A stretch of 64,000 nt of DNA from Caecitellus pseudoparvulus (Eukaryota; Protista; Bigyra: Bicosoecida). The position numbers were made by a program, and so were the translations under genes. How positions within the stretch are numbered: the first letter of the stretch is position 1; every line of letters starts with the position of its first letter. Under the pieces are notes generated by a model that searched no databases, had not been told where the DNA came from, and saw nothing but the letters and a program-made list of their open reading frames with translations. Where the stretch lies: contig CBFFRQ010000031.1 of NCBI GenBank assembly GCA_965644315.1, positions 496,001 to 560,000 of the forward strand, read 5' to 3'. Shown piece after piece: positions 20,086-31,206 of this stretch.

Positions 20086-20200
20086 GCTGAGAGGGAGGTT
20101 GGAGCTCCAAACAGGGGGGCTTCCACGGCATGAGTGGGGGGGGAATGAAAACGTACATTGCGCGGCGGCAGCGGGATTTGACCAGGGGCGGGCGCTGCGC

Positions 20201-21786
20201 TCACGCCGTCATGGCCAGCACTTCAGCTTCGGGGAGCACGGCAGCGGCCCAGAAGCGCGCCAGCACGTCCCTGCCCCGTTCCAGTGTGGAGGCCTTCCAC
20301 TCTGGCGTGTCCACGTAAAATGCCGCCAGGCTGCCTTGGCGCTGAGGGGCGTCCACTGGCAAGACGGGGTCAGCTGCCAACGCCGCGTTCAGGGTGCGAA
20401 TGGCAGAGAACACTTCGATGGGCTGCAGCGTGCCGAACTCCTGCGTGACGGCCAGCTTGAGCACTCGCCCTGGCTCGTACTTTCCCCGTGGCACCGCAGC
20501 ACCGCCCTGCACAGCCTTGCCCTTGGCTGAGCGGGCTGGGGAGCGGGCACGAGCTGATGGCACAGACAGGCCCTTCCCAGCTGGCTTCAGCAGTGCGCGC
20601 ACGTCAGCCTCCTCCTGCGCACTGCCGACGCCTGCAGCGGCACGCGCCTCTGCGTACAGCTCATACCCTGAGCACTGTGGCTGCACGGGCACGAGGTCGT
20701 GCACGAGGTCTGCGAGCTGGGGCCCAGCCAGCAACTGCACGCCGGCTGTGAAGGAGCCTGACGTCACGTACGCGACACCCTCGCCGCCGGATGAGTCCCC
20801 CTGCACGCGCAGCTGGTCCAGCGTCACGCCAGGCACTTTGTCCTCCCCTGCAAAGCCGGCAATGCCCCGTGCCAGTTGCTCGGGTTGCCCGCCGTCCAGC
20901 AGCAGCGTGTCCACACCGCTAGGCCCCAGGCCCGAGTGCACGTCCACATGCACCAGGCGGGTGAGGGCAGCGTTGGACCGGGACACGCCCAGGCCCTGCA
21001 GCACCCGCATGACCGCAGCGCCTTCTTCCTGCAGCGCCTGGCCGCCGAAGTACAGCCCGCGAGGGAAGGTGTACTGCCCGCCAACGGCAGCTTGCTTCAG
21101 GCGCCCCAACCCATACCACGCGATCATGCCGGCGGCACGCAGGTAGAAGCAGTCACAGGGCCCGATGCCGTCGGGGTTGATGAGGGGGCTGAAGGCCACG
21201 TAGTCCTCGTTGGGGTTCGCGATGAGGTCTGCGAAGCGGCCGCTGTCGCCGCTGGGCGTCCCCGGCACAACGATGGAGTTGCGGTTCAAGTCCACGTTGT
21301 TGGGGTTGAAGCGCACGCGCCAGGCCATGCCGTGCGGGTTCACGGCGTGGATGAACACCGCCAGCTGCCCGCTGCGCAGGGGCTGGTCCGCGACGCGAGC
21401 TGCATAGTTCGTCAAAAAATCCCGCTGGATGGCAGAGCCCACGTAGCCTTCGGGGCCGTGCACGCCTGACGAGTGCACAAAGACAGCTGTTGGGGCGGGG
21501 GGTTCTTCGTCATCTTCTTCGGAGTGAATGACGGCAAAGTCAATGCACAGCTCCTCGCCGTCAGGGCCCCTGCGTGAGCATCGGGATTCGGCGGCGGTTC
21601 GAATTCCGCAGAGGGCGTCGTCCCCCCGCGCAGGCTCTTCACTCACAGCAGGCCTTCCCGTGCGCCCACTCTGTGGGAAATGACTCTGGCAGTGGGAATG
21701 GCAGCAGCAGCCGCCAGGAACTGCGCCCGTGCAGCCTTGTAGTTGGTGTGGAACCAGGCGTCCACCTCGGAGGCTGACGCAGCCAT
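20201..21786 (-). CDS. DUF2817 / M14-like zinc metallopeptidase-fold protein (1 intron)
   Basis: YKAARAQFLAAA, GPDGEELCID, SSGVHGPEGYVGSAIQ, HAVNPHGMAW, NVDLNRN, GGQY..PRGLYFGG, VDVHSGLG, TQEFGT. A GTGAGT..CGCAG intron joins EGLL to GPDG. Confidence 0.85.
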
Positions 21787-21877
21787 GGCGAGGCGGGCCG
21801 TGAGCGGCGTGTGTGACAGGGCAAGGGCAGGCAGGACGCAGGAGGGGCAGGGCGCCGTGCAGAGTTGCATTTGCACC

Positions 21878-23103
21878 CTACTGATCAATGTCCTCCTCGT
21901 CGCTGTCGGAGCCGGAGGCACTGCCGCCGCCCTCCCCGTCAGACAGGTCGCCGTCCCCGCCCAGCGCCGCATCGGCACTGTACATGCGGTCCAGCGGGTC
22001 CGCTGTGCGCGCCAGCTCGGCCGCCCGCGCAGAGGAGGCGGCCTGGGCGGCCTGGCGGTCAGCGTAGGCTGCCCCCCGCATCTTGCGGGCTTCGTGGCGC
22101 AGGCGGTTGGGCGACACGAACAGGGGGTTCTGGTACAGTGTGGGGCCGCCGAAGGAGCCGGCGAAGATGCGGACGGGCGTGAGGACGCAGCGCGGGCCCA
22201 CCTCCACGAGGGAGGCGGGCTCCTCCCCCGCCGCCAGCAGCTTCTTGAGGGCCTTGGCGTCCTGCGTCGCGTCCACGATCTGGTAGTGCCGCAGCCACAC
22301 GCGGCCGTCGACGACGTAGAAGCCCAGGACGTGGTCGTGGAAGGGCTGGCTCTTGGGGTGCCCCCGCGGCACGTTGAAGACCTGGATGAACATCTCCTTC
22401 ATGAGGGCCAGGTGGGGCGCCGAGTCGAAGGCCTTGTCGAAGGAGAGCAGGGGGCGGGAGCCCTTCAAGCAGTTGCCGGCCAGGCGCAGCTCATCCATGG
22501 TGTGCACGTTCACGACGTGGAACTTGATGCTGGGGCCAGAGGGCGTCTTGGAGAACCACAGGTACAGGTCGCGCTTCTTGCGCACTTCGAAGAACACCGT
22601 GGAGCCGCAGGACTTGATCTCGGCGATTTCGTTGATGGTGGACAGGTTGTCTTTAGAATCCAGCTTGGAGTCCTTCTTGTGGTGCGGGATGAGCGCCCGC
22701 AGGTCCTCCATCAGGTGCCGGTACCGCGCCGTGATGCCGCGGGAGCAGAACACCAGCACGCGCTGCTTGTTTGTGTAGGATGGGTTGGGGTCGTACACGC
22801 CCGCGGCTGCTGAGGCGTCTGCGTGGCCGGCCGTGTCGCTGGCGCTGGTGCCACTGGCACCTGCTGCAGCTGGCGCGCGGGCGCCAGCCTCTGCAGCCTC
22901 ATCCTCGCTGACACTGTCCGCGGCGTCGGCCTGGAGAAAGGCGAGGGGGGCGGGGGGCAGGAACGTGAGAGGTGGCAGGCGGGCTGCGCTGCACCAATTT
23001 CCGCACGACACACCATGACAAGCGCCTGTTTCTTGTCCTCGTGGGCAGGTGCGTCTGCCTCCGTGGCAGCAGCCGCCTCCCTGGCCCTCTTCCGTTTGTA
23101 CAT
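21878..23103 (-). CDS. BRX1: Ribosome biogenesis protein Brx1 (Brix domain; 1 intron)
   Basis: NKQRVLVFCSRGITARYRHLMEDL, GPSIKFHVVNVHTMDELRLAGNCLKGSRPLLSFD, KSQPFHDH, EVGPR. Confidence 0.96.
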
Positions 23104-23337
23104 GTTCGCTGAGAGGCGGCTCAAGCCGCGTGTGAAGCCGACAGAGGGCTGCAGGCCCCTGCTGTGGAACAGGGGCTGGTGTTGCCGCTGGCAGGCTGAG
23201 CGGAAGGGGGTGGGTGGGAAGGAGCAGAGTTGAATCTGCAGCACTTTCAAATTACCCACGTCACCCCATCTGTGCCAGCGCCCTGCTCGCTTGCCTTTCC
23301 CCCGTGCCTCTTCGCCACCCCCCCTGCCTCGCTCATC

Positions 23338-24794
23338 ATGGCCGCTGCCGCCAGCCACACCCATGACTTTGCCACCGCCGGCTTCGGCACCAAGGTGATC
23401 CACGTCGGGCAGGAGCCCGACGCCGTCACCGGCGCTGTGTCTGTGCCCATCAGCATGAGCACCACCTTCGCCCAGGCTTCCCCCGGCGTCGTGTCTGTGC
23501 GTCCCGCGCTGCCTTCCCGTGCGCGGGTTCCGCGGAACTGCACTGCCGCTGCGCCTGCACGCTGCACAGGGCACTGACAGCGCCCTGAGCTACCACAAGG
23601 GCTACGAGTACTCCCGCACGAACAACCCCACCCGTGCCGCCTTCGAGATGGCCCTGGCTGGCGCGGAGGGTGGCAAGCACGGTGAGGCACCTGCAGAACA
23701 GCTGGGTGCCGGTGGTGCGCCGGGTGACACCTGCAAACACGCCCCCCTTGCACAGGCCTTGCGTTTGCCTCCGGCATGTCTGCCACCACCGCCATCATCC
23801 ACCTGCTGAAGCAGGGCGACCACGTCATCTCCATCGATGACGTGTACGGCGGCACCCAGCGCTTCTTCCGCAAGACAGTGGCGCCAGTGCGTCGTCAGCG
23901 TGTGTCAGCTGCTCCCCCACCACGCCAACGCACACGTCACGCCCTGGCCCGCCACAGACCTACGGCATCACCTTCGACTTTGTGGACACGACTGACTTGG
24001 CCGCTCTGGACGCCGCCTTCAAGGAGAACACCAAGCTGGTGTGGCTGGAGACGCCCACCAACCCCACCCTGAAGGTGTCTGACATCAAGGCCGTCGCCGA
24101 GGTGGTGCACAAGCACGGCGCCCTGCTGGTGGTGGACAACACCTTCATGTCCCCCTACTTCCAGCAGCCCCTGTCCCTGGGCGCCGACCTGGTCATGTCC
24201 TCCGTCACCAAGTACATCAACGGCCACTCCGACGTCGTCATGGGCGTCGTGACCGTCAACGACGACGAGCTGAACGACAAGCTGCGCTTCATCCAGAACG
24301 GCCTCGGCGCCGTGCCCTCCCCCTTCGACAGCTACCTGGCGCTGCGCGGCCTGAAGACCCTGCACGTGCGCATGGCCAAGCACGAGGAGAACGCCCTGGC
24401 CCTGGCCAAGTTCTTCGAGAGCCACGAGATGGTGGAGAAGGTCCTGTACCCGGGCCTGCCCTCGCACCCCCAGCACGACATCGCCGCCAAGCAGGTGGCG
24501 CGTGGCGCCGGCGGCAGCGGCATGCTCACCGTGTACATCAAGGGCGGCCTGGACGGCGCCCGCGTGTTCATGGAGAACGTCAAGGTGTTCACGCTGGCAG
24601 AGAGCCTGGGCGCCGTGGAGTCCCTGCTGGAGTCCCCCGCCATCATGACCCATGCCTCCGTCCCCGCCGAGGCCCGTGCCGCCCTGGGCATCTCCGACAA
24701 CCTCGTCCGCCTGTCCGTGGGCATTGAGGACTACGCCGACCTGGAGGCCGACGTCGCACAGGCCCTGGAGGCCGCCAAGGCTGCCACCGCCTGA
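23338..24794 (+). CDS. CTH: Cystathionine gamma-lyase (PLP-dependent; 3 introns)
   Basis: GFGTKVIHVGQEPD, YEYSRTNNPTR, DDVYGGTQR, WLETPTNP, VVDNTFMSPY, PLP-lysine motif SVTKYINGHSD, FTLAESLG, LVRLSVGIED. Confidence 0.95.
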
Positions 24795-24995
24795 GCGCCT
24801 AATGCATGACCCGTAGGGCTGCGCTGCCCGCCGCCACGGAGGCGAGACGCACAACGCATGGGGGCGGCTCTTCTTCGGCGTGCTGAGCCGGCGTGTGCAT
24901 GAGCAGCCACGCAGCGGCGGCATTCGACGGCCGGCACAAAACCCAACCCCCCTCCACCGCCCCGCTGCTCGCTGACAGAACCAGTGGCAGCCACC

Positions 24996-27900
24996 ATGGC
25001 ATTGAAGTTCGTGGCCCTTGTGGCCTCCCTGGCAGCTGCTGCGGCGCAGGCGCACCGTGGCAGCTGGCTGGCAGACCCTGCGCCTCGCTCCCGTGCCGAC
25101 GTGACGGGGCATGTGGAGTTTCGCGGCCCTTGCGACGCCCCATACACGTCAGCGCAAGCCCCTGCTCGCGTGGTGACCCCAGGCTCGTCCCTTGCCTTGA
25201 AGTGGCCCCGCAATGGCCGCGCTGGCGGCATGGTGCGCGTGGCGTGGGCGCCAGCTGACTTCAGCAGCTCGGACGCTGCCGCCGCCGTCTTCGACTTGAA
25301 CGTCGCCTCGTACAGCTGCTTCGAGGCGTCCTGCTCCGCCACGACAGGCTGCAATGCGGGTGACATTACCACTGGTTGTGATGCCTGCTCCCACACGGTG
25401 CAGGTGCCGCCCTTCCCCAGCGGAGCGTACACGCTGCAGTGGTGCGTGCAGCACCGGCACCGGCCACGCCGCTTCCCCGCGGCACACGCCGCCCGCTGCG
25501 CTCGTGCACAGGGTCTGGTACGGTGGCGGCCTCGGAGCTGCTCCCCAGTACAGCTGCGTCGATGTTGTCGTGCGCAACACGGCTTCCACAGGCAACCGTG
25601 CGTGCCCATGGCCGGCTGCAGGCCGCAGCATCGCAGCGACGGCACCCTCACTGCACCCACGCCGCCTTCCCCACCACAGTATCGCCCGCATTCACCCCTG
25701 GAGACGCCAGTGGCAGTGCCACATGTGGCGTGTGTGACTCCTGCGACAAGGCGTACCCTGCAGGGACAGGGCCGTTGCTCTCGGCGTTGGCAGAGGGCAA
25801 CTTCACCTCCCGAGCCCGGTCCCCCGGCGCTGGCCCTGCTCTGGGCCTGCCCCGGGAGGAGGCGGAGAGTGCCGCCTGCACTGGCTGCTGGTGGGGCACG
25901 TCTGGCCGCTGCCAGGCCTCCAACACCATGTGCTACGAGACCCTCGTGACAGGGGAGTGCCCCGTCGGCACCGTGCGCTGTGGCAACCAGGCCCGGGAAG
26001 GCGGCGCCCACCCGCCGCCGGCCCTGCCCTCCCCAGGCCCCGGCGCCAGCAACAACCTGCCCTCTCCCTCCCCTTCCCCCGTCACTCTCGCCATCACGCC
26101 CGGCACCTCCACGCCAGGCGTCGTGCAGTGCCAGCGGTGTGAGCTGAACAGCCGCGGTCCCTGCCAGGCGCCCAACGGCGTCTGCTTCGGTTACTCCGCC
26201 CCCGGCAGCTCCACGTGCCCAGAGGGCACTCTGGCGTGTGCCTTGGATGCGACAGCGGACTTCCTGGACAACGTCGGCGCCGCCGCCGGAGTCACAGCCT
26301 CCAAGCGCAGCGCCCCAGCTGGCGATGGTACTGGGGCGCCCGCCTGCAACGCCTGTGTGGACGACACGAGCGGCCCCTGCGTGGCGCCACTGGGCGCTGG
26401 CGCCAGCCAGCACATCTGCCTGCCCTTCCGTGGCTCATCTGGGCGGTGCCCGGCGGGGTCAGTGCCCTGTGCAGGGTCCAGCCTGGTGGCGGGCGGGGAG
26501 GGGTACTCCCTCACCACTGCCGCGACGCCGACGCCGTCCCCCCTGCCGTCCCCCGCCGCCTTGCCCCGTCGTCAGTCCGTGCTGGCACAGCGGGGTGGGC
26601 ACCCCTACGCGCAGATCGGGTATGTGGACGCCACTTCCGTGGGCCTGGCAGCTCGCAAGGCGTCCCGCTTCCACTTCGACGTCACTGCAACCAACGCCAG
26701 CCTGTTTACTCACTTGGTGTGGGCGTACGCCCGGCCCGTCCTCGTGCCCACCTCCAGCACCGCCTACCGGTACGGCTTCTCCGTGTACGGCGCCCGGGAA
26801 ATCCTGTCTGGGTCGGAGGGCAACCCCGCCGACGGGGACATTGCCCGCTGGCACGCTCACGTGCGGTCTGAAAACCCCGCCATCCGCACGCTGCTGGGCG
26901 TGGGCGGGTTCTCAGCGGGGGCTGGCTTCTTCTCGTCAGCCCTGAGCACTGAGGCTGGCCGGGGGGAGATGGCTGCTCGCCTGCTGGGGTTCGCCCGCGC
27001 GCAGGGCTTTGACGGCGTGCAGGTGGACATCACCTACCCAGGCGCAGAGGCGCTGGGCGGGGATGCGGGGGACGACAAGGCGAACTTCCAGGCCTTCGTG
27101 TCGGAGCTGCGCCGGCTCATCGACGGGGAGGCACGCGGGGCCGGAGTGGACCGCCTCATCCTGTCGGTGGGTGTGTCCACCACCCCCGCCATCATTGAGG
27201 ATGCGTACGAGCAGGCCGCCCTGAGCCAGGCGGTGGACCACCTGGTCCTGCATGCGTGGGATGTGCGGGGCCCGTGGGAGTCCACCACCGGCTCCGCCAC
27301 GCCCCTGACCGATGCCGGCAAACAAGGCCTGGGTGTCTCGGACTTCGTGCAAGGCTGGCTGGATGCCGGCGCGGAGCGGGGTAAGCTGGTGCTGGGCGTG
27401 TCTGCTTACGCGCGTGCCTGGCGCCTGACGCCTGACGGTGCGGCACAGGTGTCTGGCACCTACCCCCGAGTGCCAGCAGCTGGCCCTGCGCCAGGTGGCC
27501 CTGACTCCGGCGTGCCAGGGTACCTGACGTACTGGGAGGTGCAGGACATGGTGCGGGGCGGCGCACGCGTGCACTGGGACGGCACGGCTCGCACGTGGAT
27601 TGCAGAGGACGGCGCCGTGTACGCCAGTTTCGAGAACGAGGTGTCCCTGCGGGGTAAGGTGGACTTCATCCGGGAGACACGCATCGGCGGCTACGCGCTG
27701 TGGGCGGTGAACACGGACGACTTCCTGCACGGCTCCCCCCTGGCAGCAGCCCTGGCCACACGCATTACCGCCCCCGCCTCGGACCTGTTCCTGCTGGACG
27801 TCGCACTGGCCGGCAACTCGGGTGTGGGCACGGCGGGCCTGCCGCCCCTGCGCCGCCGCATGCGGGCCTGGGCGCACTCGTGGCTGAGCCTGGAGCCCCC

Positions 27901-29188
27901 TGCCGACACAGACCGCGTGGTGGAGGAGAGTCGGTGCTTCGAGCCTGTCCTGCTGGCGGGCGCGCTGGCGGCTGAGCTGGCCGTGCCGCCCACCGCCCTG
28001 GCAGTGTCTGACATCACCGGCTGGCGTGGTGCCGGCGACTTGAACGACGGCGTCGCCTGCCCCAAGGTGTACACCGTCGGCCTGCGCTTTGTGCAGGATG
28101 TGGGCCTGCCCCTCACCACCTACGCAGGCAGCGCCCAGCCCCCCGACACGGCTCGCATCTCCACCTCCATCGACGCTTCAGGGCTGTGGGTGCCTGCGAA
28201 CCCACCGGCGGACGGCGCCCCCGACGCGCCACCCTCTGGAGCCGCCCCCGTGAACGGCTCTGCGCCCGGTGCCGGCGGCAAGGCGGGTCTGCCCTCCATT
28301 TTCGACGGGGGCGTGGGATCGGGCGGCGCCCTGGGCCCCGCCGCCGCCGTGCCCATGGTGGACTCCTTCTCCCAGGCCAGCACCCTGCAGCGCCCCTCCA
28401 GCGGCTTCTTCGCCTCCCAGCCCTCCTGGCTGGCGCCCTTCTGGTACACGGACGTGGCCCGGGCAGGGAACGCGCGGGGCCTGGTGGGTGCGTGGGAGGA
28501 CCTCGTGGCCGCCGCTGCCGCCGCGCAGCCGGCAGGTTCCTTCACTGGGCCGACGCTGTTCGTGGGCGGCGGCACCTTCGCCATCAACAACGTGCGGCGG
28601 GTGTCCGACAATGTCCTGACGGACTCCACACCCCCCTCCGCGTCGGCCGCCAAGCCCCCCTCCCAGGACACCTCCCGACTCTCCGCTGGCGCTGTTGCTG
28701 GCATCGTCATCGCCGTCATCGTCGTGCTGGTGGTCATCGTGCTGGCCGTCGTGTACCGATCTCGCATCGCGGCTTCCTGTGGCGGCGCGTCTTCTGGCTC
28801 CCGCCCCTCCCGCCGCCGTACCCTCTCAGGCACCCAGCGCCCCCCTGCAGCCTTCATGTCCAAGTGGCCCCCCACTGCAGGCACTGCGCCTAGCCAGGGA
28901 TCGGGCGGGGGCGGCAACAGCGTCTTGACGCCCCCCGTCACCTCCCAGCGCGGCTCCACGCCCTCCAACGCGCCCACCCGCTCCCGCTCCATCAGCGGAG
29001 CAGATGGCACGCCCCGCCCCGCCTCTGTGCGCCCCGCAGCGCGGCTGGGCGCCATGGGGGCCACCGACGCCCCCCCTCGCCCAGCGTCTCGCCGCACGGC
29101 CCCGAGGCGGGTGGTGGCGCCACCCTCCGCCTCCACTGGGGGCGGGGCCCAGGCCCCTCCCCCTGTTCCCTCCCGCAGCTCAAAGTGA
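24996..29188 (+). CDS. Type I membrane protein: signal peptide, LPMO-like domain, 3 Cys-rich repeats, non-catalytic GH18 domain, TM helix, Pro/Ser/Arg-rich tail
   Basis: The signal MALKFVALVASLAAAAAQA is followed by His. Introns 25442-25511 and 25598-25679 join the ORFs in frame. GH18 motifs are FTHLVWAY, LLGVGG, GFDGVQVDITYP, KLVLGV..YAR and GGYALWAVNTDDF. The TM helix GAVAGIVIAVIVVLVVIVLAVVY lies at ~28688-28756. Confidence 0.85.
25873..26470 (+). repeat. Three degenerate Cys-rich protein repeats (CxxC...SGxC...C...CPxG[TS]xxC)
   Basis: CTGCWWGTSGRCQASNTMCY..CPVGTVRC; CQRCELNSRGPCQAPNGVCF..CPEGTLAC; CNACVDDTSGPCVAP..IC..CPAGSVPC. Confidence 0.8.
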
Positions 29189-29350
29189 CCGCCCGCCCCT
29201 GGCCGCGCGGCCCGTAATGTGTGTGCGTGTGTCACAGTGCACCCTGGCTCGCCCCTGTGTCAGCCCCACTCCCCAAGCTGGGCGTGGTGCTTCCTCGTGT
29301 ATTTGTTCCTGAGCCACAATGCAGACACACAGCTTGCGCCGTGGCGCCGC

Positions 29351-31206
29351 TCACCCCCGCCGTGCCCGCCTGGCCAGACGAGAGGACCGCCGGACTGGGG
29401 TGGGGGGCTGCTTCACGGAGTCCCCCCCGCCCTCGCCAGCCACATTCACAGGCGCGCTGGCGAGGGGGGTGGCGCTCCGGCGGGGGCGCTTGGCGGGGGA
29501 CGCGGGCGGGCACCGCGCCGCCTGCAGGCGCTGCGCCAACGAGGGCATGTCATCCCCCGAGTCCTCCGAGGCGGAGTCCAGGGTGATGGGGGGCGGCGAG
29601 CGCTTGCTACCCCCCAGGCGGGACGGCAGGGGACTGCACCCCTCCCCCGGCGCCGCGCTGGGTCCGGAGCTGGCACTGGTGGCGGTGAGGGGGGACGGTG
29701 CCTCGGGTGGACAGTCTGCCTGCATGTCACTGGCCAGCCCCGCCACCCGTGCCAGCAGCGCATCCACCTCGCCAGTCACGCAGGGTGGGCGAGCCGAGGG
29801 GGGTGTGCTGCCGCCTGCCGCGCTTGCAGCAGCGGCACTCTGCGTCGCACCACCTCCTCCACCACCCTGCTGCACGGAGTATTCCTGCACCACAGCCTGC
29901 ACGTCCACTGTGCGGCCAAGTGCCGCCAGGCGCGCAGCCCGGCCCCGGGGCGCGCGCCCAGCGGTGCGTGTGCGCGTGCGGCGGCGGCGGCGTGGTTCAC
30001 GTGCCGCCTCCTCGCTGGCCAGGGACGACTGCATGGCTCGCAGCGCGACCCGGTCTTCGTCGTCACTGTCGTCGACGTACAGGACACCGGGGTCATCTGG
30101 CGCCGCCTGGACCGCCGCACTGGTCCGTGCAGCAGCTGCGGAGAAGGCAGCTGCTGAGGCCGTCGTGCGGCGTGAGCGCCTGCTGCGACGCGGGCTGGTG
30201 TGGCCACTGGGTGCAGGCGGCGAGTCAGTGTAGTCTTCGTCCCGGCCACTTGAGTCACTGTCTGTGACCACCTCCGCCACTGGCACACGCCGTGCACGCT
30301 GACCCCGCCGGCGGGAAGATTGGGGCGCATTGGCGCCTGCTGTGCGCACAGGCACGCGTCGGGCGCGAGTGCTGGTGCGTCGGCGGGTGACAGACGCGGC
30401 AGCGGCACGTCGCACGGGACGACGGCGAGCCGAGCGCCGGGCAGGCGCCGGCTCAGGCTGGGCGGCGTCTTCCAACAGCGCGGCACGGATGGCAGCCCGG
30501 TCTGCCGCAGGCAGGGACTCGTCCTGCTCCAGTGCAGCCAGCTGCATCCCGCTCTCGTCACTGCGCCCGTGTGCCATTGGGGCCTCATTGGCGCGGCTGA
30601 TACCAGGCAGGGAGGCGGCCACGCCGCCCAGCATGGCGGACCAGCGGTGGATGACGTCATACACGCCCCACATGCCGCCCTGCCGCGTCCCGCCCGGTGA
30701 CGTGCAGGACTGAGGGTACCCCTGCGCCGCCGCTGCCTCTGCCGCCAGCTCCGCCACCTCGTGGTCCAGCCAGTCCTCCGCCTCGCCCGCATCCAGCCAC
30801 TCGTCCTCCTCCTCCTCGTCGTGAGAGTACTCGTCCGAGTCCGCCACCATGTCCAGGGACGTGTAGTGCACAGGCACGTGCTGGTCTCGGTCCGCCACGC
30901 GCTCCGTGCGTGGTGCCGCCGCACGGCGCTGGCGCCGCGAGGCCGAGCTGCTGCGGGCCTGTGTGATGCCGTGGAAGCGTTCCTTGCACACAGGGCAAGT
31001 GTTTGTCACTTTGGACCATTCTTTGATGCAGGCGTAGCTGGTGGAGGCGCAGGGGGCGTGGGGGGGTCAGCAACTGCTCAGCCGGTAGGTGAGGCGGGGC
31101 GCCACCGCGCCACACACCAAAACTCATGCGTGCAGCCGTCCAAAGAGCCCTTGTTGGTGATGGCGTCCTGGCAAATCACACAAATATTGTCATCTTCGCC
31201 TTGCAT
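29351..31206 (-). CDS. RING-HC E3 ubiquitin ligase with long disordered acidic/Arg-rich C-terminus (1 intron)
   Basis: Spliced CVICQDAITNKGSLDGCTHEFCYACIKEWSKVTNTCPVCKERF is a C3HC4 RING. Confidence 0.88.

Follow-up and report, generated by a model that had tools for sequence, protein, structure and literature searches.

Gene structure

The stretch of DNA analysed here (the window) comprises 64,000 nucleotides of a contig of Caecitellus pseudoparvulus (CBFFRQ010000031.1, positions 496,001–560,000), with a guanine plus cytosine (GC) content of about 0.56–0.74, and belongs to a host genome of 30.6 Mb in 215 contigs with spliceosomal introns. On its + strand lies a gene (ATG at 24996 to TGA at 29186–29188; 4041 nt, 1346 codons) whose predicted product, here called the window protein, joins a domain of the lytic polysaccharide monooxygenase (LPMO) fold to a domain of glycoside hydrolase family 18 (GH18), neither of which appears to retain its catalytic residues, and ends in a predicted membrane anchor and cytoplasmic tail. 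The gene is divided as follows:

24996–25441, + strand: exon 1, which starts at the ATG.
25442–25511, + strand: intron 1, 70 nt, GTGCGT...CAG (GT-AG), phase 2, splitting a Trp codon.
25512–25597, + strand: exon 2, which carries the final strands of the LPMO fold (VWYGGG...PQYSC), Gln161 standing in the axial-Tyr column.
25598–25679, + strand: intron 2, 82 nt, GTGCGT...CAG (GT-AG), phase 1, splitting a Leu codon.
25680–29188, + strand: exon 3, which ends in the TGA.

Searches, folds and alignments were run exon by exon and not on the joined spliced protein, and the splicing model is based on comparison between species. A syntenic ortholog from metagenomic contigs (locus L006; protein P0002, 53% identical) has two introns at the identical Trp (phase 2) and Leu (phase 1) codons, although their sequences are unrelated to those of the window introns and their lengths are 57 and 62 nt. 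Similarly, a third species, of high GC (L022, the contig that carries the protein fragment P0004), has both introns at the matching places, with GTGAG donors. In the relatives P0007 and P0011, the LPMO-like and GH18 domains lie within a single uninterrupted open reading frame (ORF), and the two halves therefore belong together. The first-pass annotation had proposed one protein after removal of two GT-AG introns, and the intron positions and phases in L006 and L022 support this proposal; there is thus strong comparative evidence that the locus would be a single three-exon gene conserved across three species. The alternative, in which the N-terminal exons form a gene of their own or the locus is a drifting pseudogene, might be suggested by public gene callers, which divide the locus into products of 363 and 1086 aa, but such a split is the usual output of a prokaryotic gene caller at introns. 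This alternative is very improbable given the matching introns in three species, the joined frames of P0007 and P0011, an unbroken frame of 1346 codons and the selection counts reported below.

The start Met of the ortholog is homologous to the Met at 24996. An in-frame ATG lies upstream at 24858, and in the window strain its frame is shut by a TGA after 14 codons (24858–24902). In P0003, the predicted protein of another strain, the upstream frame is not closed and adds 46 residues at the N-terminus, so that an indel polymorphism is present in the 5′ leader. An extra phase-0 intron was also observed in the ortholog, within Cys repeat 1 (L006:6045–6111, GTACGT...GCAG, 67 nt); the window gene is without it, which would indicate a recent intron gain or loss.

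The LPMO-fold domain and its copper site

The N-terminal part of the protein is composed of the following features:

24996–25052, + strand: start codon and signal peptide, MALKFVALVASLAAAAAQA (Kyte–Doolittle 1.71), with A-Q-A preceding His20.
25053–25441, + strand: part of the LPMO-fold domain encoded by exon 1, in which the His1 column is occupied by Gly22 and the His2 column by Arg75.

Exon 1 by itself gave no Pfam match and no PDB sequence match. When 1.84 billion representatives were searched exhaustively with HMMER, exon 1 had 80 homologs of 140–1515 aa, whose consensus has the classic LPMO layout, namely a signal peptide, HSYLxxPxSRSNQ, WPRNNH[PA]GGFIR, CHE and YTLQWxWxGG..DYYSC. The profile of this LPMO-like family matches AA11 structures over the C-terminal half only (4mah, E 3.7e-6; 9exj, E 4.4e-6), and faint Pfam matches to AA9 and DUF7492 were obtained in a few relatives. 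The AlphaFold2 (AF2) model of mature exon 1, built from an alignment of 70 rows, has a pLDDT of 92.7, and Foldseek with this model gave AA11 as its best match (probability 0.97), with AA9, AA10 and AA13 next in order. With VIA-align, each of the top 47 rows was an LPMO or an LPMO-like protein (Z 8.1 to 5.2), the best Z being 8.1 for AA15, 7.4 for AA13, 7.2 for AA10, 6.9 for AA11 and 6.6 for X325, and the matches from AA15 to AA11 extended over 100–124 residues. Meanwhile, the nearest clusters in the ESM Atlas consist of eukaryotic proteins of the LPMO or chitin-binding type-4 kind (TM 0.68–0.76). The LPMO-like N-terminal domain of the first-pass annotation was therefore recovered when AlphaFold and Foldseek were applied to exon 1, and its fold is, as modelled, the LPMO fold, an immunoglobulin-like beta-sandwich. 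The nearest solved family is AA11 by sequence, while AA15, AA13 and AA10 equal AA11 by structure, and the CAZy family is given as a candidate only.

The copper site is a different matter from the fold. The His1 column holds His in 31 of the 43 rows that cover it, and the window protein has Gly22; the His2 column holds His in 63 of 70 rows, and the window protein has Arg75, with Arg or Lys also in L006, P0004 and P0005. The axial-Tyr column, three residues before a conserved Cys and aligned with the Tyr of EMYMNC in AA11, is Tyr in all 13 intact members and Gln161 in the window protein, with Gln also in L006, L022 and P0005. The copper site is thus, to judge from the alignment columns, wholly lost, by replacement of His1 with Gly22, of His2 with Arg75 and of the axial Tyr with Gln161.

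The first-pass annotation had described an N-terminal-His domain. His20 does stand at the mature N-terminus, but it is off-register and is not the His1 of an LPMO. Relative to the His1 column it is placed two residues upstream; it occurs only in the window sequence, and the ortholog, which lacks it, has Pro or Tyr instead (AAAP-YGSWL in the ortholog, AQA-HRGSWL in the window protein). In the VIA-align structure alignment it is model residue 3, and not residue 1, that pairs with residue 1 of mature LPMOs. His20 is read as incidental. A re-evolved copper brace built on His20 was considered and ruled out, as the residue is off-register and lacking in the ortholog and the second His is missing. 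The Tyr of QYSC was likewise ruled out as a retained axial Tyr, since the AA11 alignment and the column counts place the conserved Tyr one position earlier, where the window protein has Gln.

The GH18 domain

26606–27760, + strand: GH18 domain without the catalytic acid (Pfam PF00704; solved chitinases at E 1e-55 to 1e-23).
27008–27040, + strand: degenerate catalytic motif FDGVQVDITYP, aligned to LDGIDLDWEYP of solved chitinases.

The GH18 domain matches PF00704 at E 5.3e-45 (154.9 bits, profile positions 19–317 of 317); at E ≤ 1e-3 it matches 131 solved GH18 chains, and solved chi-lectins align with it at E 1e-28 to 1e-34. Active GH18 chitinases require the motif DxxDxDxE with its catalytic Glu, and loss of the Glu gives chitin-binding lectins. 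In the window protein, Gln625 occupies the place of the second Asp of the motif (D2) and Thr629 that of the catalytic Glu, so that the sequence departs from DxxDxDxE, and both the coordinates and the alignment agree with the first-pass annotation on the change of Glu to Thr and of one Asp to Gln. The corresponding motif of the ortholog is FDGVALDLMYP, with Ala at D2 and Met at the Glu, while the relatives have FDGVDLDWEYP, FDGFSLDWEYP and FDGVELDFEYP. A further change concerns the MxYD motif, the Tyr of which assists the oxazolinium intermediate in GH18: the relatives have LMTYDLHG, and the window protein and its ortholog have LHAWDVRG and LHSWDVRG, respectively, in which the Tyr has become Trp. 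With these residues, hydrolysis by the normal substrate-assisted mechanism is not expected. The earlier proposal that both chitin-attacking modules are disarmed is accordingly upheld, and the LPMO module, with three copper positions replaced, is disarmed more fully than had been claimed.

Ten residues that putatively belong to the groove do not vary between the orthologs, namely the F of GGF, the W and D of AWD, the W of GPWE, the Y, R and W of AYARAW, the W of ALW and both Asp of the DD pair, and in characterised GH18 enzymes these residues line the central subsites. The catalytic positions, on the other hand, differ between the orthologs (Gln/Ala and Thr/Met). A relaxed catalytic centre combined with a constrained groove is the pattern expected of a lectin-like derivative, which is suggestive and not proof.

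Intact relatives and descent

The first-pass annotation did not know this architecture from characterised proteins. It is shared by three uncharacterised metagenomic relatives, P0007, P0011 and P0048, which have the same layout of LPMO-like and GH18 domains. P0007 (1515 aa) has HSYL and NNHPGG intact, Cys modules, a GH18 domain with FDGFSLDWEYP, a transmembrane (TM) helix and a Pro/Arg/Ser tail of about 150 aa. P0011 (985 aa), annotated at its source as a chitinase, has a hydrophobic C-terminal anchor; in both proteins the full order of parts is present and the catalytic motifs are intact. P0048 (1168 aa) has LPMO-like and GH18 domains, the GH18 motif being intact, and its predicted protein sequence showed no membrane anchor. 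Since intact relatives have it, the architecture of LPMO and GH18 is inherited.

A quick maximum-likelihood search on the LPMO-like domain, with SH-aLRT supports (* for values of at least 95) and a midpoint root, grouped the window protein with L006 and P0004 in a clade of support 99*, which P0005 joins at 86 and P0006 at 97*. This entire group is nested within a clade (96*) that also holds P0007, P0011 and P0008. The P0006 cluster (L016–L018; 231–232 aa, 16 metagenomic members) has lost His1 (PPPGSYL) and kept His2 (NSHAGG), and, branching just outside the fully dead clade, it looks like a putative intermediate stage of copper-site loss. The tree and the motifs suggest that the copper site may have been lost stepwise within a subfamily that already possessed the LPMO, GH18 and anchor.

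In P0007, a copper domain of the plastocyanin/azurin type (residues 384–479; PF00127, E 2.7e-11) was observed between the LPMO-like and GH18 domains, and it could serve as a built-in electron donor for the LPMO of a membrane-tethered chitinolytic protein.

Selection on the degenerate domains

Selection was assessed by Nei–Gojobori counts per exon, for the window and L006 only. The proportion of nonsynonymous differences (pN) was 0.20–0.43 over all segments, against a proportion of synonymous differences (pS) of 0.53–0.78 that is essentially saturated. The segments between the window and L006 gave the following values:

LPMO-like segment: pN 0.35, pS 0.78.
GH18 segment: pN 0.30, pS 0.67.
Post-GH18 segment: pN 0.26, pS 0.68.
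Tail segment: pN 0.43, pS 0.68.

As pN is about half of pS in every domain and the frame of 1346 codons is intact in both species, a drifting pseudogene is excluded. On these counts, both dead domains show the marks of purifying selection and are apparently still constrained. Word-indexed homolog searches with the whole of exon 3 and with the GH18 region returned only the same-species protein and one ortholog, and a metagenome scan recovered only the contig of the known ortholog.

Predicted extracellular modules, membrane anchor and tail

The remainder of the protein consists of the following features:

25691–25789, + strand: Cys module following the LPMO-fold domain, FTPGD...CxxCxxCD..YPAGxGPLLSAL, common to P0007, P0008, P0011 and P0048.
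25877–25981, 26129–26239 and 26345–26470, + strand: three repeats of six Cys (residues 244, 328 and 400), with Pro/Ser linkers between them.
27761–28123, + strand: conserved post-GH18 domain, 62% identical to the ortholog, its outline common to the relatives.
28124–28684, + strand: distal stalk, rich in Gly, Ala, Pro and Ser.
28685–28756, + strand: single TM helix, AGAVAGIVIAVIVVLVVIVLAVVY (Kyte–Doolittle maximum 3.60).
28757–29188, + strand: cytoplasmic tail and stop codon, 143 aa (S24, P23, R19; net charge +19).

The three Cys-rich repeats noticed earlier were found again by pattern match; they follow C-x2-C-x6-8-C-x6-11-C-x8-9-C-x6-C, are 74, 62 and 55% identical to those of the ortholog in repeats 1, 2 and 3, respectively, and have no match in Pfam or the Atlas. 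This pattern differs from that of the Cys modules of the relatives, and a kinship hinted at by the MAFFT alignment alone is not claimed. The post-GH18 domain is the best conserved part after Cys repeat 1. Its AF2 model has a pLDDT of 49 and is unusable, and a SEA-like alpha/beta stalk domain would be only a guess.

The signal peptide, TM helix and tail topology were assigned by hydropathy only. A signal peptide, one TM helix and a positive-inside tail would fit a type I single-pass membrane protein, and hydropathy agrees in this with the first-pass annotation, which had given a Ser/Pro/Arg tail of about 140 aa where 143 were counted. Within the tail, the block PPRPASRRTAPRRVVAPP at 29072–29125 is near-identical in the ortholog, as PPRPA(S/P)RR(T)APRRVVAPP, and the rest is poorly conserved, except for SVL[ST]P and a basic Ser cluster. 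Basophilic sites are present as RRRTLS and RSRSIS. The PPRPAxRRxAPRRVVAPP block looks like a putative proline-rich docking motif.

The first-pass annotation went further and saw a fit with a carbohydrate pattern receptor, or an adhesin, directed at chitinous prey or particles. In the signalling form of this reading, ligand binding by the dead domains would pass through the phosphorylatable tail and set off phagocytosis or a change of behaviour. A type I topology with a basic, Ser/Thr-rich tail of 143 aa, the RRRTLS and RSRSIS sites and the conserved docking-like block are in line with such a receptor, as is the nature of the host: no light-harvesting genes were detected in its genome, so that it is a heterotrophic eukaryote. 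In addition, plant receptor kinases with GH18 ectodomains exist, for instance tobacco CHRK1 and related proteins, in which the GH18 ectodomain is borne on a receptor-like kinase (PMC5485988). Like the window protein, CHRK1 has a GH18 ectodomain, a single TM helix and a cytoplasmic region, but it has a kinase and no LPMO module, whereas the window protein has only a disordered tail. The GH18 domain of CHRK1 is likewise reported to lack the catalytic Glu. The prey receptor is nevertheless rather unlikely, because Pfam found no kinase or other signalling domain, the intact P0007 already has a TM helix and a similar tail, so that the tail is older than the catalytic loss, and chitin is absent from bacterial prey. 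The genome has, moreover, its own chitin synthases, at four loci, and ligand-dependent signalling, like the prey-receptor claim as a whole, is pure inference.

Chitin metabolism in the host genome

Four loci of the genome with large ORFs (L010–L013; on C68, C89, C96 and C50) each encode Chitin_synth_1 and Chitin_synth_2 domains, and two GH20 hexosaminidase loci and one CE4 deacetylase were also found. From these gene contents, the organism can probably make chitin, and, with four chitin synthases, chitin from the cell itself is no less likely than prey to be the ligand. The chitin synthase genes are not co-located with the LPMO/GH18 gene. The sole other GH18 locus (G000:C49:59122–59814; L009, ORF 919–2223) is a weak match at E 2.9e-10 with LDGLTVELPDV at the motif position, and its product is taken by us, from its sequence, to be CHID1/SI-CLP-like; proteins of this kind are not known to be catalytic. 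No intact GH18 chitinase was detected in the genome by searches that give lower bounds, and a GH19 search found nothing, its control likewise finding nothing, so that it is uninformative. As for LPMO-like paralogs in the same genome, weak single-sequence matches were lost in the profile search, and the window gene was the sole family match, which is again a lower bound.

These findings bring in a second explanation, according to which the protein is a structural organiser of self-made chitin that tethers or patterns nascent fibrils at the plasma membrane, in a cyst wall or in a matrix, comparable with the non-catalytic chitin organisers of arthropods. It draws on the four loci with both chitin synthase domains and on a gene set with one CE4 and two GH20 loci but no intact GH18 and no further LPMO-like family member found. 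It has also been reported that the protoplast-feeding protist Orciraptor expresses AA11-like LPMOs bearing a signal peptide and, C-terminally, a TM helix, alongside a chitin synthase (10.1101/2021.12.30.474559); the authors of that study suspect that chitinous material is secreted and leave the role of chitin open (10.1101/2021.12.30.474559). Weighing on the other side, chitin deposition by the host is hypothetical and the gene stands apart from the chitin synthases, and the explanation overlaps with the surface-lectin reading favoured below, from which it differs only in the source of the ligand. We hold the organiser as a tentative possibility and place it slightly above the prey receptor.

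Genomic neighbourhood

The gene order is common to the window (about 20200–31000) and L006 (1–15429), and comprises a DUF2817 gene, a Brix gene, a Cys/Met-PLP (pyridoxal phosphate) enzyme gene, the LPMO/GH18 gene and an antisense ORF; beyond the antisense ORF, L006 continues with an ABC-F gene and then a kinase gene. The GC content of L006 is much lower than that of the window. No partner gene is evident in this conserved neighbourhood. Directly downstream of the gene, an antisense ORF of 552 aa (29351–31009, − strand), rich in Arg, Ser and Ala, was observed, with a counterpart of 517 aa at the same place in L006, and its N-terminal CPVCKERFHGI motif may be RING/zinc-finger-like.

Comparison with known proteins

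The chi-lectins (YKL-40/CHI3L1, Ym1 and the insect IDGFs) resemble the window protein in that the GH18 barrel has its catalytic Glu replaced. In Ym1, as in the window GH18, the third Asp is kept and D2 and the Glu are replaced. Chi-lectins are soluble, single-domain and secreted, whereas the window protein is, as predicted, membrane-anchored and multi-modular, is fused to an LPMO-fold domain and has lost a subsite Trp. With the AA11-type LPMOs it has the LPMO fold in common, and its predicted membrane tethering is of the same kind as that of the AA11-like proteins of Orciraptor; the consensus of its own family keeps His1, His2 and the Tyr, but the window protein has none of them. Bacterial AA10-CBM-GH18 enzymes, such as that of Jonesia denitrificans, carry an LPMO and a GH18 domain with binding modules between them and are secreted, with both domains active. 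They share the one-polypeptide design with the window protein and differ from it in having AA10, no membrane anchor and retained activity.

Non-cleaving use of the LPMO scaffold at the cell surface, as proposed here, has precedents in CWR-1 and in the LPMO-like copper proteins of the X325/Bim1 type (6ibh), but both of these keep the copper His brace, of which the window domain has none. The AA11 domain of Neurospora CWR-1 has been reported to act in allorecognition independently of catalysis (PMC9550227). By analogy, the dead scaffolds might have taken on a non-carbohydrate, moonlighting role in protein–protein recognition, between cells or between self and non-self. In CWR-1 this function does not depend on His-brace activity (PMC9550227); the loss of the N-terminal subsite Trp from the GH18 domain suggests a changed ligand, and the Cys repeats differ in pattern from the Cys modules of the relatives. 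We nevertheless consider such a role improbable, since the orthologs do not differ in the aromatics of the central GH18 groove or in the DD pair, as retained sugar binding predicts, and the conserved neighbourhood has no evident partner gene.

Proposed function

With moderate confidence, we regard the window protein as a non-catalytic type I surface glycoprotein, selectively maintained, which derives from a tethered AA11-like LPMO and GH18 ancestor and binds chitin or a related N-acetylglucosamine (GlcNAc) glycan. The argument for a retained binding or organising function is that both active sites have been lost and yet purifying selection continues. The ancestor would have belonged to a protist family of membrane-tethered AA11-like LPMO and GH18 chitinase proteins, and in the lineage of the window protein both catalytic centres would have been lost, the one through its copper site and the other through D2, the Glu and the Tyr of MxYD. 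What remains would be two carbohydrate-facing scaffolds and three Cys-rich modules, all raised from the membrane by a stalk. At the cell surface these could bind, in a lectin-like manner and without hydrolysis, chitin or a GlcNAc glycan related to it, the ligand being either the chitin of the organism itself, given its four chitin synthases, or external particles, and the conserved Pro/Arg-rich motif of the tail may couple this binding to cytoplasmic partners.

Several points weigh against this interpretation. In the window protein and its ortholog alike, the GGWNFN loop of GH18 is shortened to GGF and the N-terminal subsite Trp (YYTNW) is lost, after which the groove may no longer bind chitin. 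The nesting of the dead domains among intact ones comes from a quick tree with a midpoint root. The selection counts come from a single pair with saturated synonymous sites, public data holding one full-length ortholog and one fragment. Lastly, Pfam gave no domain, kinase or other signalling, C-terminal to the TM helix, the tail being low-complexity Ser/Pro/Arg; a TM helix and a Pro/Arg-rich tail are already found in the catalytically intact P0007, that is, before inactivation, and the tail therefore need not signify signalling.

A bolder version of the surface-lectin reading is that the ancestral tethered LPMO-chitinase turned into a dedicated surface sensor of chitin or GlcNAc, with capture relayed via the tail to the cortex and leading to adhesion, phagocytosis or encystment. 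We put this forward as speculation and think it less likely even than the prey receptor. If it were true, no carbohydrate receptor made of two pseudoenzymes would have come before it, and the plant chitin receptors would have a protist counterpart.

Pseudoenzymes derived from carbohydrate-active enzymes are known singly, as in the chi-lectins and LPMO-like proteins, and here two apparently dead chitin-attacking domains stand on one anchored polypeptide. Behind it, an uncharacterised eukaryotic family of membrane-tethered AA11-like LPMO and GH18 proteins, its presumed active ancestors, is revealed, one of them with a cupredoxin, which is of interest to biochemists of LPMOs and chitin. In marine heterotrophic flagellates, GH18 and an LPMO family have been reported to be highly expressed, with the role of chitin left open (PMC10268365). 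The window protein offers a handle on the role of chitin in heterotrophic protists that have chitin synthases and no detectable intact GH18.

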